A DNA stretch of 64,000 nucleotides, from positions 62,001 through 126,000 of the forward strand of contig JALMLS010000353.1 of the NCBI GenBank assembly GCA_038496445.1. Direction: 5' to 3'. Below are positions 26,812 to 35,044 of this stretch, in pieces (within the stretch, counting starts at the first letter, position 1; every line of letters begins with the position of its first letter). The position numbers and the translations under genes were made by a program. The notes under the pieces were generated by a model. The model did no database searches. It was not told the DNA's origin and saw only the letters and a program-made list of their open reading frames with translations. Origin of the DNA: Trichosphaerium sp. ATCC 40318 (lineage: Eukaryota > Protista > Tubulinea).

Positions 26812-29800
26812 TCATTCAAAATTTACAATTGCAATTTTCTCTAGCTTTTTATGAGCCATAGCATCTAATCTACACAAGATAATTTTCTCTTTTTCAAGCT
26901 CAGGTCGACCAAAATTAGTGTAAATGTTGACTTTAACCTAAAATAAACATGTTAAGATTAAAATCGGAAAAAAAATCAAAGCTCAACCAAATATGTGAAC
27001 GCAGTCAAGTTGTACGTACTGTAATGCCATCAGTGAGAACTCTTTTTCCTGGAGAGAATAGACGAACGGAAATTGTATAGTCACCAGCCAAGGCTTCCCT
27101 TACCTACGCAAATAAAGTTAAACCCAAAATCCTATTGGTATGTTTTATTCACATACTGTATACTCAACAGGTCCATATCCTTGTGAAAAATCTCTTGATA
27201 GCATACCCCCGTTCTTTGTTGTGTTATTGAACGAATGACATTGTGTACCATCAGGCTAAAAATTAAGCAAGTAAGTAAAATGAGAAAAATATGAGAATTT
27301 GTTTTATTCTTACCTCTGTTATGAATAGCTCTACATCTGTCATATCTGTATCCCAAGTACATACAACACGCATATCAACGTTAAGAGGATTAGAAAGAAG
27401 AACATTAACATAATCAGGTAAGTTCTGTAGACGAAGTCCATGACATTTTTGAGCAATACTACACATATCCATCATACAAACCATCTCAACTTGACTAACA
27501 ACAGTAGTTAGTAAGAAACGAATAACATTATTTTAAACTCGTAAAACAAGGATTGCTTTGTCAAAAAGAAGATTTGTTTGTGGCCGTACTTGAAGCGTTC
27601 ATCCCATTTCTTTGTAACAATTTTTGATAATTCTTCTGTCGCTTCAAAATAAAGTCCTTTACGTGCTAGTGCATGTGAAAGGTCTCTGTGATTTTGAGGT
27701 TCTTCTGGACGCATTTCACACAGTCTCTTATACATGTGAATAGCTTCATCATTTTCACCATAAGCCTCAAGCAAGTATGCCATCATCCTGTACAAACAAA
27801 AAATGAGTACCAGACCTTTTTGTCTTGCGTTTTCTTCGCTCTTTGTATTTTTTTCTTTGTACCTCAAATACTTTGGTTGATCGATAGATATCTCTGCAAG
27901 ATTACTAGCAACGGACAAAGCTTGTTTGTTATAATTTCTTACAAAGCTGAACCAAGCAAGGTCAAAAGCAGTATTTACATCATATCTCATTGTAGCAATT
28001 TCGTTCTTCTGGTACAAGTTGAGAATACTACTCTCAGATGCCTACAGACTTTAGCCAAACTAATCAAACAACAAAACAAAGAAGTATTATTAGCTTGAAT
28101 AAAGACATGTGCGTACATTTGGTTGAAGTTGTTTAACATACTTTGAAGACATGTAATGTTCACAAACTTCTACAGTAAGTTTTCTTTGTTTTTTAGCTTT
28201 CATTGGTCCTTGAATGTATATGAAGGTCTATTCATAACATAGTAAGCAAAAAAGAGTGAGAGTATTAAACAACGTACATGTCTCTTTGTACTTAAACTCT
28301 CATGATTGTTTGAAACTTCGTCAGTAACACCCGAAATAGTTAAAGTCTGCGACATGTCTTTTAAGCTGTATCCTGTAAAGTCTAAGTAAAACAACACTGG
28401 TGCCTAATTATTGTTCTGGTACCTCTCGCAGCAAGTTCATAAGGTTCATAGTTGTCACTTGTAGGAGCTGGGGCAATGTACTTCTATAAATAATAGTCAA
28501 CAAAAACAGATTAAAAATTGTGATTGTCGTACATGATGCTCTGTACCAGAATGACGAGATTGGCTAATGTAATTAATTACTTAATTTGTTGTTAATAGGT
28601 ATTACGAACCGATAAGGAGGAGTGGTATTCTGGTAAGCATTTAAATTTGAGCTAAAATGAACAATACTTCTCATGTATGACTTTCTCCATATAAGAACAC
28701 CAACAAACAACCCACCAAGAACACCTATGACTACAGCGCCAATAGCAACGTCTATTTAAAAAATCCAAGTTAACTATCATTGGGTAATAATAGCTTGTGG
28801 TAACGCACAATAAGTCCATCCAAGTATCCACCAGAATAACCAAGAAGAAAAAGATACAACAGAAGAGAAGCTTGGAATCAGGTTCCATAAAAACAATATT
28901 GCATTGTACTGCCATCCAAAAGTATACTTCCAGGGTAATAGATACACTATTAATCCAACAGCAAAGAACATAATAATCCAAAAAACAAAAGAAAAAGAGG
29001 ATTGGCTTTTACGAGTTTTGTAATATCTTGGATCCATATTATCTAAAAAAATAAGAAAAATGTGAGAATTCAAACTTCTCTTGGAACAGTTGCCGTACAT
29101 CCTACAGTAGGTACTGGTTCATAAGATGCTGAACCCATTTTCATTTTTCTTGACTTCTTCTTGTACAAGGTGCGTGGTATATAATTAACAGAGCTTGATA
29201 CAGCTCCAGCAACATTACTGATTGCTCCACCAATTGCAGCTCCAACAGCACCTACCCACCTTCTTCTTCTCAGACGATTAGACTGTTTGCGAAACCTAAG
29301 ACTTGAAGACTGAAGGCTTTCGCTCTGAGCAACCAAGTCTTCTAAACGCTCTCCACGTTCCACAATCTTGTCTATACTTTGAACCATCTTAAAAATTTGT
29401 TAGTACACTTAGCTTAGATACTGAAAAGTTGTACCACTTCTTTAACATGTTCTATATTTGATTCAACATCAGCAATTTTGCTGTATTGTCTCCTACGTGG
29501 GCGCAATTTTGCTGCTCCCTTGCGACTGACTCGCTTCTTCTGTTTCCCTCCTCTAGTAGGTTTGTTTGATTTCTTTGGTGGAGGTGGTATGGCTGCACAG
29601 TCTTGGTCTCCTCCCCAGCCACCTGGTGCTGCAGAATAGGGCGTGGTCTGTGTTTTTAATCTTGACGATCGCCTAGGTGCAGGACAAGCTTGTGGTGCTG
29701 TTGTTGGTATCATAGATTTTCCTGCCGGTGGTGCTTGTGCACTTGAGAAAAGACTAGATACTCTTCCCAACATACTTTGGTTTTCGTTACTCATATATTT

Positions 29801-32800
29801 TAACAGGCTAGCATCAGCTTCTTCTGGTGCGATTTCTGGTTCTGGTTCTGGGAGTGGTGCCATATCACCATCATATAACCCGTCCTTTTCATCAATATCA
29901 TTCAGTGCCGTACTAATATCAGAACGACTATCTAATTCATCTGTCGGCGGTACATCATACATTTCACCGCCCAGTTCCTGCAAACAATCTTCCGTATTTT
30001 CATACTGTATCTTTGACTGTTCAATTGGGAGCGATTGTGATTGATCATTAAAGGTACCAAAGTCATCACTGTCATCATCAAAGAGCGATAAACCTGCTCC
30101 ACCTTCACCTTCACACTCAGAAGAATCTCTGCTATTAAAATCTGAAACAGGAGCTGGAACAGAAGCTGCAGCTAGAGATGTTGGAAAACTGGTTGGTAGG
30201 CTTGTTCGAGGGCGATATTCATCTCTAATGCCACCCAATAATGAAAGGCGCCTTTTTCCATCAGCTTTTTTTTCTCGTGCGTTGTTTAAAACAGGAGGCG
30301 GAGCAGGAGCTCCAGATGTCGGATAAATACTTGGTTTTTTAGGTATAGGGGCGTCGTCATCATCGTCATCATCGCCATCATCTCTATCATCGCTATCATC
30401 ACTACCATCGTCACCAAAGAAGGAGAATCCCATCTCACTGTCGGAATCAGTGTCACTTACTTCAGCAAAAGGATCAGGAGCTGCTGCGGCGGCGGCTACT
30501 GGTATTTCGTTTATACCCAATTTGACATCCTCAGGCCAAGTATCGTCAGATCCAAACAAATCAAAGCCCATATCTTCATCATCTTCTTCCTCTTGTTCGT
30601 CTTCATTATCAAAAAGATGTACTGGTAATTGTTGTTGTTGTTTTCTGTCGCTGACTACTAACTTGCTGATGTCTGGAGTGATTCGTTTCAGTTTCTTATC
30701 TGATTTCTTTCCTTTTTTTCCTTTTATTTTCTTTTCGACATCTGGAGTATCCTCTTTATCACGTGAAGATCTACGATTTCTTCGAACACTTAAAGGAGCA
30801 TCAGCTAATTTCACGCGCTTTTGTCTTTCAAGCTTCATCACCTCCTTCTAAGAACTAGGTGAGCAACACACAATGTTGTAAACAATAATATAGTACCATC
30901 TTTGTTTGAAGCTGAGTTGGTTTTGTATCTTCGATAGGTTCAGCTTCATTATGGCTCACCAAGTCAAGGTTGTCAAAGTCAAATTCGAAAGGACTGAATT
31001 CAAGCTCTTTTTGATTTTTTTCTTCACGTGGTACTGTTTGGTATTCCGAAACACGTTTCTCGAAAAAATTTGTAGACCCAGCAACGAACTTACTCTTTTT
31101 AAACTGAAGAGGAACATCAGCAATCTTGAAAGCTTGATTATAATCTGTTCCTAAACCGTCCATTTGTGTGAATGATTGGAAATGAAGCATTTGGTCCACT
31201 TTATCAAAATCAGACTGCTTGTAGCTCCACCTGTGTTAATGGTTAACGTAGTTGAACATAAACCAAACAATACTCACCATGTTTTTCGCCTTTCCCATAA
31301 ATTGAGAACTCTGTTTAATTTCTCGTATAGTTCGTTCTCTCTATGCTTCATCTTTTCTTCCATAATAGCAGCGTAACTGGAAACAAGATCAGGAAGAGAA
31401 GATGGTGGCTCAATCTCATATCTGATGTACTACACAGAATTAGAAATAGTTATCATTTATTTGTTGTTTTACCTGATCTAGAGTCTCAAGTACGATAAGC
31501 GATGCACCTTCAGTTACCAACGTGAACTCTTTTCCGACTTCCATTATTTTATCCTCTAAAGAATCATCGTCTTTAGCATCCAAAGTCAATTCTTCTATCT
31601 TCCTCTATTGAACAAAGTCAAAAAAGATATACATCATGTTGGGTAAAAGACTTACTTGAGCCCAGAATCTTGGCGCTAATCTGTCGTGATCTAATGAATC
31701 ACATAAAGGTAAATCGAATGTTACTGACTTTATAACTTCTCGCGAGGTAAAGTATCCATAATTGAGCTTGATTTTAACTGATTTGATAGCTTTTTTTGTT
31801 ATTGCTTTGGTATTTAATTTTGCTGAGATTTTAAAGTTTGATGTAATAGGTGTTCTTGCTGAAGGATATATCTATTACAAGTTATTCTGGGTTTACTTCT
31901 AAAGCCCTTTTACCTCTTCTATTATGTCTTTAGGATATTCAGCATACAAGAAACCAAACGTAGGTCGTGTCAAAATTGATGCAAAAGACGCTACGTTATA
32001 AGACTCATTCAAATTAAAAAATGATCCTCCGCTCTTTCTTGACCATAACCTTACTTTTGTTTAGATCCTGTAACATAATGAAATAATTGACGTACTTCAG
32101 TAGGGTGAAATTGGACTGTACAGATGCGCTGAAGAAGTGCACGGGAACTGAAAGAATAAGTACGGCCGCCAGTAAAATCGCTCCAACTCACCTTCAAACT
32201 TTGGCATTTCCTTAGATCCAACTGTATCCATCCCGTTTGTAAACGCCATGAAGAAATCGTATGCTTCGCCACTCGGCCCTTTAGCAGGAGCCTTTAGGAG
32301 ACTCATATTGGTACCTGAATAAAGGTTGGTAATTGTACAAAAAAAATAGCAAAGTACCGCCATCATAATGAAGAGTCCTTAGATACTGTATAAGATCACG
32401 TGTATTCTTTGAAGAAAACTTCTTTGGTGAAGTATCCATTGAAAATCCAAAAGAGTAAAGATGAATATTAAATGGATTAGAGCGAGATAATTGATCTACA
32501 ATTTTTCCTAGGGCTGTGAACGTTTTATCATCTTTTTGACTGCGAGACCTACAAACATACTACGTAAAAACAAACAGCATAAAACGGCTTGTACCTGTCC
32601 CAGTAAATGCCTACAGTTGAGAGTTTTCTTTGACGAGATGCGGAAGTTTTATGTTCGATATTATCACTGATGGCGAAGTAAGTGCCTACAAAGGTTAGTA
32701 AGGCGAACAAAACCAAAATATGGTTCAAAAAAAAAGTACCATCTTTGTGATATCCCGACGCAATGTGCGCTTGTGAATTGTTTTGATGACAAGGTATGAA

Positions 32801-33865
32801 CAAGGTCAAATCTTCATTTAGTTTCTGATTTTCACACGTGGCTTTAACAATTGTACATGTACGAGAACCAGAAATAATACATTTCTTAGAAAATGTGCCA
32901 TTACTCTTCACAATTGGAGTGCCAACCACTGTATCACATAGAATTTTAACCTTTATCAACGTGTCAATATTATCAAGCAAATAGCCAAGGAGTATCCGTA
33001 CGTTTAAGTCACATGTACGTGGTTTGCCATTAACGTTTAGCGGTAATTTGTATGTGTAGCCGTTATTAGCGTAAGGCAAATCGAGTGTATAGTGAACACG
33101 GACTGTTCGATATCCATTCGCAGGCACCGGATATACACGTGTTTTGAAGACATTACCTGCCTAATATTAAATAATAAGTACAGACTTGTCATCCAAAAGA
33201 ACAATAATCACGTGTCAAAAAAGTTTCTGTGTTTACACATACCACTTTCTCAATAATTGCAGGCCCACGTCTCTCATGGCGCACCTCTGTCTCAAAAGCA
33301 ACCCTAAAGAAGAGTAATCAAAAACAAGAAATAGTGCTGACGTTGACAAAAAAGGAAGAGGTGTAGATAAGGCACAGTTCTGTTACGTAACGTAAAATCA
33401 AAAAAAGAAAAAACACAAAACATTGCAGTTTTTATTTGAAAGTCGGCAGTACTTCTGCTGTCTAGGTGTTAGTTTTCGTACCTCGCTTTCTCTTTAGGGC
33501 ATATTACGCCTGGAACCATTTTACCGTTGACATCAATAGCGTATCCACAAACGCTGCTATCTAGTTTGCATTAGCGCTTATATAGCACTTAGGGCATTAA
33601 AGCGCTTCTAGAAGTACCTTCAGGCAAAGGCATAACAAGTTCGGCTTCAACGTCTTTCTTGCTATCGTTACGCCATTTCATTGTAAGTATAGTCTCTGTA
33701 TGCAGTTTTTAGCTTAAAACAGCACAATACATTTTAAACGCATAAAAAGAAACAAAATTAGTTAATCGTACCTGAGAGGAATTTGTTGACATTTGCTTGT
33801 ACATGTAGGCTGTCAAGGGCAAGTTTTGTACTTGTACCCTTAACAACTAACTCCAGCGTAGTCAT
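26812..33865 (-). CDS. VIT - vWA-like - long variable linker (with TM segments) - TPR - DUF2135/YfaP-like protein
   Basis: VIT: EAELVMPLP, GYAIDVNGKMVPGV, KARVAFETEVR…GP, FKTRVYPVPANGYRTVRV. Then GIYWD, FTNGMDT, RFWAQ, SLIVLETLDQYIRYEIEPP, WERRKTWW. C-terminus: RPEEPQNHRDL, DMRVVCTWDTDMTDVEL, SRDFSQGYGPVEY. Confidence 0.85.
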
Positions 33866-34276: not shown

Positions 34277-35044
34277 TTAGTTTTTAGAAACAGCGTCAGA
34301 AAGCCATTTAAGAGCTTCAAATAAATTATCACCCGTTGTGCATGAAGTGCCAATTATATGGGACTTTGGAGATGGTAATGCAGCCATGCCTATTTCATCT
34401 TTAACCTCTTCTACAGACATTGCTTCTTTCAAATCCTACAAAGTTCATTAAATGTCTTTGTAACAATCTCATTTGACAGCACCATCTTGTTTGCCAATAC
34501 AAGCACCACAGCATCTTTAAGCTCTTCTGCTCGTGTGAGTAGTTGTAGCTCAAGTGCAGCTTCATATTGTTGTCAGTAAGCTAGGCAAGGCGCATCACAG
34601 TTTACCTTTCTCCATTGATTCACGGTCAGTTGCATCAACAACAAATATTATAGCCTTTGCTCTACAGTAAGTAAGTACCAACTGTAGGCAATATATGACG
34701 TGTACCCTTTATAGTAGTGTTTATACAACAGCCTGAATTTCTCATCCAGTCCAAGTGTGAAACTGTTAAACGTTATTCTTTGAAGCATACCAAACACAAT
34801 ATGTTTGAGGGTACGTAATAAACTGCAGGTTCTTGTAATTGTTCTCTTGTACATTCAGGCCTGTATTTGGTATAAGTGCTAACTCGTTAAAACTTGTTTA
34901 GGGACCTATTGTTGGAATTGTAGTTATTGTATTCCCTAGGCGTAGTTTAAATATGAAACTGGTTTTTCCAGCGCCAGATAGGCCCAATAACAAAATGCGG
35001 ATAGTTTCTTGCTCAGGACTAAAGAATTTCACTGCGTTTCCCAT
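34277..35044 (-). CDS. ARF-family small GTPase with degenerate G3 motif
   Basis: MGN myristoylation start, [38 protein letters not shown]; FTLGLD replaces WDVGGQ. Confidence 0.85.

Follow-up and report, generated by a model that had tools for sequence, protein, structure and literature searches.

A complete VAMP-type R-SNARE helix with a weakened anchor in the loop of a VIT-vWA scaffold gene of Trichosphaerium

The window analyzed here is a 64,000-nucleotide stretch of contig JALMLS010000353.1 (positions 62,001 to 126,000 of the forward strand) from the genome assembly GCA_038496445.1 of the amoeba Trichosphaerium sp. ATCC 40318. The DNA is eukaryotic and AT-rich, and its introns are short and of the GT-AG type. 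On its minus strand, a gene encoding VIT, von Willebrand factor A (vWA)-type, TPR, and DUF2135 sequences contains, in the long loop between its two halves, a VAMP-type R-SNARE helix spread over two exons (Table 1). Positions are those of the window, features on the minus strand are written from high to low, and all searches were run exon by exon and not on one spliced protein.

The exon carrying most of the helix, exon S (29387-29099, minus), was sufficient on its own to match the Pfam family PF00957, Synaptobrevin, at 50.3 bits (E = 2.1e-13; cut-off 26.4). The match spanned profile positions 19-66 of 89, and the piece of open reading frame (ORF) searched was 29387-29073. The N-terminal part of the motif, KIADVESNIEHVKEV (29479-29435), closes the 471-codon linker exon (exon L). 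When a position matrix made from 23 canonical R-SNAREs, covering the 15 residues before the core, was applied to all six frames of the window, this peptide ranked first among 55,707 stop-free 15-mers, with 14.3 bits compared to 9.1 bits for the next. Since the best N-half match and the exon S match lie on either side of it, a predicted 47-nucleotide intron (29434-29388) splits a complete 16-layer helix. Aligned by MAFFT with canonical VAMPs, the pieces from the two exons abutted with no gap and no overlap. Alignment and direct reading showed that all 16 layers are kept (I V I V M S I R L L S L S F S L), the arginine of the zero layer being encoded by CGT at 29357-29355 on the minus strand. The VAMP-type R-SNARE helix is genuine and complete.

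The intron has the donor GTACAAC, the branch site TACTAAC, and an AG end, and all eight RNA-confirmed introns of the same gene begin with GTA, as this donor does. The idea of a separate VAMP gene that begins with the exon S ATG was rejected, since a long ORF upstream of the intron already contains the first third of the motif. The first-pass annotation, a reading made from the sequence alone, had already located the helix, and its coordinates proved essentially exact, including the presence of the zero-layer arginine; the splice it proposed was right in substance, with limits (29388-29432) that differ slightly from the intron found here.

When 1.84 billion representatives, which do not include the protein encoded here, were searched exhaustively with phmmer, 90 VAMP-type matches were obtained at E <= 1e-3, with lengths of 51-420 residues and identities of 36-56%. 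All were confined to the core of the motif except one, the protein P0064, and no orthologue carrying this cassette was found among these representatives. The named top matches were VAMP7, whereas the solved structures ranked by closeness were VAMP4 (2nps_A, E = 7.9e-7), VAMP8, Snc1, VAMP7, and VAMP2. Judged by these resemblances, the helix is an endosomal or post-Golgi VAMP-type motif, 60 residues being too few to fix the subfamily. A word-index protein search with exon S gave zero matches, and neither the viral contigs nor the plasmids (tblastn) that were searched contained a match. A metagenome scan gave a single match, a canonical longin VAMP7 from a GC-rich organism (L003), which is not relevant here. 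A hidden Markov model derived from the core found no second SNARE motif anywhere in the window, and no Pfam family, longin included, was detected in the 475-residue upstream ORF or in the preceding ORF (30855-31199).

The segment that follows the motif departs from the VAMP pattern. After the juxtamembrane-type RRRRW comes a 23-residue Gly/Ala-rich stretch of borderline hydrophobicity, whose maximal 19-residue Kyte-Doolittle mean is 1.59, compared to 2.38-3.21 for the anchors of six canonical VAMP matches. The stretch, which has basic residues before and after it, aligned with the VAMP anchors (MAFFT). What directly follows the basic-tryptophan juxtamembrane segment is thus not a hydrophobic anchor, and the Pfam match stops at position 66. 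An AlphaFold model made from the sequence alone, of low confidence (mean predicted local distance difference test score, pLDDT, of 63), consisted of one helix, residues 2-67, the remainder being disordered; the Gly/Ala stretch was modeled as a helix continuous with the SNARE helix, with pLDDT of about 75 at model residues 41-60, which comprise the juxtamembrane residues and most of the stretch. The Gly/Ala stretch is probably a de-hydrophobized relic of a VAMP anchor. The reading frame stays open for 61 codons in all after RRRRW.

Upstream, the SNARE helix is in frame with 471 and 113 open codons (about 590 in total), a predicted 49-nucleotide intron (30896-30848) joining the upstream loop exon to exon L. 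The VIT domain of the same gene is suggested by two collinear Pfam matches, one to profile positions 16-43 (E = 0.009, 16.6 bits) and one to 42-70 (E = 0.0005, 20.5 bits), both below the cut-off. Between VIT and loop, DRSRS and GGT motifs of the metal ion-dependent adhesion site (MIDAS) type are readable in exons near 32560-32290, and BLASTP of the window exons against the vWA domain of a second locus described below, on contig L001, gave a weak match (E = 0.003). Pfam and NCBIfam found no match for the vWA and DUF2135 exon pieces, and no WD40/Lgl or PH domain was matched by Pfam in any exon scanned. No paralogue of the scaffold was found within the 64-kb window, and an Rfam scan of 26-34.5 kb found nothing. 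A minimal-intron path search upstream returned a path other than the RNA-supported one and was not used as evidence.

The linker exon also carries features of its own. Two peptides lying in acidic runs, DEDMGFDLFG (30580-30551, minus) and DSEMGFSFFG (30442-30413, minus), resemble the C-terminal peptide of the ribosomal P-stalk; additional acidic-aromatic motifs occur at 30094-30044. Pfam finds no family for these motifs. The poly-Asp run of the exon is encoded by a tandem repeat of 9 or 18 nucleotides at 30354-30410. An Arf-family GTPase gene closely precedes the VIT-vWA gene, its last exon (Pfam Arf, 1.4e-5) being found at 34277-34432 on the minus strand.

Downstream, three introns are predicted between exon S and position 28483 (29098-29043, 28808-28752, and 28605-28484), delimiting exons T1 and T2. 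The two hydrophobic segments of T1 have Kyte-Doolittle values of 2.58 and 1.53, and the helix of T2 reaches 2.65. The donor at 28605 is the sole in-phase GTA donor before the stop of T2, according to the list of candidate donors and phase arithmetic done by hand. With these introns removed, the exon chain L-S-T1-T2-a to g is free of stops and reaches the RNA-confirmed exon a in phase 0. When the 772-nucleotide stretch was shuffled with dinucleotides preserved, 4 of 300 shuffles permitted a stop-free in-phase path with at most three short introns. Because the predicted exons T1 and T2 encode strongly hydrophobic helices, the protein may yet be attached to a membrane, some 45-60 residues beyond the motif; the first strong hydrophobic helix starts about 60 residues past it. 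T1 has phase 1 on both sides and can therefore be skipped with the frame kept. It is thus a possible alternative exon, whose skipping would change the number of membrane helices. No RNA and, in Pfam and the ESM Atlas, no relatives were found for T1, and an ESM Atlas search with T1 and exon f gave no usable match. The T2 tail contains a PPxY-type motif (PPYR, 28620-28609, minus), of the type that WW-domain ubiquitin ligases bind.

The last seven exons, a to g, encode a spacer, TPR, and DUF2135. The TPR assignment comes from Pfam TPR_14 (E = 1.8e-4) and NCBIfam TPR-type matches down to 6e-6, all below the family cut-offs and mutually consistent. Exons f and g matched residues 143-160 and 163-191 of E. 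coli YfaP (DUF2135) collinearly in BLASTP (E = 8e-6 and 4e-7). A search of prokaryotic genomes with the DUF2135 exon found nothing, and one with the exon/YfaP alignment found enterobacterial yfaP loci only. In E. coli K-12 (L004, 9368-18645), yfaP belongs to the cluster yfaA-yfaT-yfaS-yfaQ-yfaP; yfaS is the bacterial alpha-2-macroglobulin, a bait-region protease trap, and a pseudogene in K-12.

Only two sequencing runs matched the locus, both weakly: X1, with at most one mismatch, and X2, which is related (90-99% identical). Spliced X1 contigs confirmed six introns between 28422 and 27256, and one X1 contig runs 19 letters past 28483. The end of exon g at 27148 was set by the reading frame, the RNA contig reaching only 27206. 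Contigs of X2 lie on 29457-29608, 30687-30837, and 30989-31168, and X2 confirmed the introns 31913-31872 and 32739-32685. Eight of the ten listed differences between X2 and the window, located in scaffold and loop exons (27413-31088), are non-synonymous, a pattern that would suit fast evolution as well as relaxed constraint.

The interpretation given by the first-pass annotation is partly supported, three of its statements agreeing with what was found. It had described a helix inside a non-SNARE protein, a Gly/Ala stretch replacing the usual transmembrane segment, and an ORF that continues; the flanks do encode VIT, TPR, and DUF2135 sequences with no longin in the upstream open frame, the stretch is far less hydrophobic than VAMP anchors, and the predicted stop-free chain leads to the RNA-confirmed 3' exons. 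Its wording, which spoke of "host VAMP7s" and of a signal that targets the protein to phagosomes, implies a pathogen effector, but the gene is the amoeba's own and is rich in introns. The functions it suggested, protease bait, tomosyn-like inhibitor of fusion, or targeting signal, are all candidates.

Table 1. Features of the VIT-vWA gene with the R-SNARE helix, in the order of the minus strand; X1 and X2 are the two sequencing runs described in the text.
Feature	Coordinates	Strand	Basis
VIT-domain exons of the same gene	33472..33708	minus	two collinear sub-threshold Pfam VIT matches
Upstream loop exon, 113 codons	30897..31235	minus	open frame; run X2 contig 30989-31168
Linker exon (L), 471 codons, acidic, disordered, without Pfam domain	29435..30847	minus	open frame; run X2 contigs
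N-terminal part of R-SNARE motif, layers -7 to -4, 3' end of linker exon	29435..29479	minus	matrix rank 1, alignment
Intron within SNARE motif, 47 nt, phase 0, GTACAAC...TACTAAC...AG	29388..29434	minus	predicted, read directly
C-terminal part of R-SNARE motif, layers -3 to +8, and juxtamembrane-type RRRRW	29256..29387	minus	Pfam Synaptobrevin, PDB, and phmmer matches
Gly/Ala-rich helix in place of the VAMP transmembrane anchor	29187..29255	minus	hydropathy, alignment, AlphaFold model
Basic spacer (KKKSRKMKM and flanking residues), closing exon S in phase 1	29099..29186	minus	sequence; modeled disordered
Exon T1, 234 nt, phase 1-1, one strong and one weak hydrophobic segment	28809..29042	minus	predicted
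Exon T2, strong transmembrane-type helix, basic stop, tail with PPYR	28606..28751	minus	predicted
Exons a-g, spacer, TPR, and DUF2135	27148..28483	minus	RNA-confirmed, spliced X1 contigs
Exons a 28483-28423, b 28372-28278, c 28227-28117, d 28041-27863	27863..28483	minus	RNA-confirmed
Exons e 27787-27590, f 27494-27314, g 27255-27148	27148..27787	minus	RNA-confirmed

A second locus combining VIT and vWA sequences with an R-SNARE was found through P0064, the one phmmer match that extends beyond the SNARE core (43% identity to exon S over 65 residues, E = 8e-14). Its contig, L001, comes from the Logan assembly of run ERR3696740 and belongs to another organism. It encodes VIT (weak) and VWA_3 (1e-22) followed directly by a Synaptobrevin ORF on the same strand (5e-12), and here too the SNARE motif runs into a non-hydrophobic tail of small residues with no anchor. 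Word-index searches with P0064, whole or limited to its SNARE region, returned P0064 itself and one other protein, P0095, which shares both flanks of P0064 (45% identity) and has a different insert of 260 residues at the position of the SNARE. An IBB domain considered for this insert was downgraded (Pfam 18.9 bits against a cut-off of 23.8). The L001 and window scaffolds have no detectable similarity, and the two SNARE captures may therefore be independent. A further R-SNARE, P0034 (L002 12-815, JGI metagenome 3300044998; Pfam 7.5e-17), has a Gly/Ala/Ser-rich, non-hydrophobic spacer of about 100 residues between its motif and a strong transmembrane helix; L002 begins 11 bases before the P0034 ORF.

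We tentatively favor the reading that the captured VAMP cassette is displayed by the variable loop of a VIT-vWA scaffold and binds partners without driving fusion, a tomosyn-like mechanism, and we place it somewhat short of an even chance. A VAMP helix would have been captured as genomic exons, about 650 residues into the variable loop of about 1000 residues of a VIT-vWA-TPR-DUF2135 scaffold. Since the motif is intact, it should still bind what a VAMP binds, and the helix could zipper with the partners of endosomal VAMPs, either the cognate Q-SNAREs or other proteins that recognize VAMPs. Lacking a tightly coupled anchor, it would be unable to pull two membranes together. McNew and colleagues reportedly showed in 1999 that fusion is lost when a long flexible spacer separates motif from anchor; fusion should therefore be prevented here, where the anchor is weakened and any real membrane helix lies about 60 residues off. 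The cassette would then bring the VIT-vWA scaffold and the partners of VAMPs together, as an adaptor or as a bait. The motif and its intactness, the continuous frame, the weak anchor, and the flanking domains are observed, whereas a single transcript across the SNARE exon, the binding of partners, and the non-fusogenic role are the parts of this picture that we infer.

Several points weigh against this reading. No RNA contig from X1 or X2 covers 28484-29456, the SNARE exon included, so that the SNARE splice, T1, T2, and the join to the TPR-DUF2135 half are predictions. The T1 donor, GTGCGT, is atypical compared to the GTA of the eight confirmed introns, and the T-rich stretch of T1 and T2 has a second open frame as well. 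The vWA domain was not detected by Pfam at the exon level, and the second locus, given the lack of similarity between the L001 and window scaffolds, may represent an independent event. The non-synonymous differences in X2 would also fit relaxed constraint, and binding of Q-SNAREs by the helix is putative.

Among the alternatives, the likeliest, still an unlikely one in our estimate, is that the protein is an integrated decoy, a surveillance scaffold in which the VAMP helix mimics a host protein that pathogen effectors target, be they SNARE-cleaving proteases or SNARE-binding effectors, and in which an attack alters the contact between the loop-tethered C-terminal domain and vWA and triggers a response. 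The replacement of the SNARE of P0064 by another insert in the related scaffold P0095 would fit such a system, the linker that holds the SNARE also holds the P-stalk-like acidic motifs, most X2 differences are non-synonymous, and the DUF2135 namesake yfaP adjoins an alpha-2-macroglobulin gene in E. coli. Set against this, the proposal comes with no known effector, cleavage site, or signaling output, a PADLOC scan gave no match, and no paper describing such a system was found. In a broader form, which we consider speculative and about equally improbable, the intracellular VIT-vWA proteins of amoebae and other protists would be a surveillance family whose tether loop displays copies of host machinery targeted by pathogens, in this case the helix of an endosomal VAMP; binding or cleavage by an effector would free the C-terminal domain from the vWA and switch the protein on, the anchor having been disabled to keep the copy harmless. 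This would amount to a eukaryotic integrated-decoy system unrelated to nucleotide-binding leucine-rich repeat receptors (NLRs).

The helix might instead be a neutral relic, a VAMP fragment that landed recently in a loop tolerant of any insertion and has no function of its own; we regard this as rather unlikely. In the VIT-vWA family the loop is long and disordered and shows poor conservation (PMC10539598), the anchor has decayed, no orthologue with the cassette was present among the 1.84 billion representatives, and the mostly non-synonymous X2 differences would be compatible with it. These points have to be reconciled with 16 layers and a zero-layer arginine kept intact across an intron, with a frame that is open for more than 1000 codons, and with a similar anchor-less R-SNARE in a VIT-vWA gene of another organism, all of which argue against a functionless fragment.

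It is doubtful that the protein is a true anchored, fusogenic R-SNARE with a giant N-terminal extension, its anchor being the Gly/Ala helix or the helices of T1 and T2. The hydropathy of the Gly/Ala stretch is far below that of VAMP anchors, and basic residues stand on both sides of it, even if the model draws it as one helix with the motif; T1 and T2 are predicted to contain strong hydrophobic helices, but the first of these begins about 60 residues past the motif, long flexible spacers reportedly abolish fusion, and the ORF then runs on into TPR-DUF2135. P0034, in which a spacer also precedes a strong transmembrane helix, is another R-SNARE of such an arrangement.

That the locus is an artefact of the gene model, with separate VIT-vWA, short VAMP-like, and TPR-DUF2135 genes and no helix inside a larger protein, is very improbable: the gap in RNA over 28484-29456, the ATG at the start of exon S, and the stop at 29072-29070 that appears if intron 29098-29043 is retained would suit it, but a 471-codon open frame upstream of the intron closes with the N-terminal third of the motif, contigs of X2 fall within this frame as far as 29457, and the in-phase chain reaches RNA-confirmed exons, with an X1 contig going past 28483.

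The occurrence, in the VIT-vWA scaffolds of two unrelated organisms, of a complete VAMP helix with 16 layers and a disabled anchor points to an undescribed use of SNARE helices and offers a first clue to what the long loop does in VWA5A-type proteins. Should loop inserts be baits, they would point to a new kind of cell-autonomous immunity in protists; should they be adaptors, to proteins that bring a single activity to many different machineries of the cell. Our literature search found no paper on DUF2135 and none on SNARE motifs in VIT-vWA proteins.

By analogy, the arrangement recalls the integrated decoys of plant NLRs, in which a copy of a host domain sits in a larger scaffold and the insert varies between paralogues. 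Unlike those receptors, the window protein contains no NLR or known immune signaling domain, and no effector is known for it. The helix itself resembles VAMP4, VAMP7, VAMP8, and Snc1, with 40-56% identity over about 45 residues, the 16 layers, the zero-layer arginine, and the basic-tryptophan juxtamembrane end. The protein differs from these VAMPs by having no longin domain, by the Gly/Ala helix (1.59) in place of the anchor, and by some 1200 residues before the motif and several hundred after it.

To our knowledge, tomosyn and amisyn are the only proteins other than true SNAREs in which R-SNARE motifs are known, and there the motif serves to brake fusion. Both form non-fusogenic complexes with Q-SNAREs. 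Like the window protein, tomosyn (STXBP5/Sro7) and amisyn (STXBP6) carry a single R-SNARE motif, without a directly coupled anchor, on a large non-SNARE carrier. Unlike them, the window protein has no Pfam match to WD40, Lgl, or PH, its motif is internal to a loop and not C-terminal, its carrier is a VIT-vWA-TPR-DUF2135 protein, and hydrophobic helices may follow the motif.

The locus on L001, where VIT and VWA_3 ORFs precede an R-SNARE with a non-hydrophobic tail, resembles the gene studied here. It differs in its VWA5A-type C-terminal domain, in its short loop, and in a scaffold without detectable similarity. One VIT-vWA clade is common to bacteria and some protists, and the roles of VWA5A-type proteins are poorly understood (PMC10539598); that paper makes no mention of SNAREs. 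In Dictyostelium Vwa1 and human VWA5A, a long disordered loop tethers the C-terminal domain to the VIT-vWA core (PMC10539598). The window protein appears to follow the same plan, a VIT-vWA core with a long disordered loop tethering a C-terminal domain, and it is in that loop that the SNARE lies. It departs from Vwa1 and VWA5A in that its C-terminal domain consists of TPR and DUF2135, presumably as in the bacterial-type branch, and in that its loop is about 1000 residues long and carries a SNARE helix.

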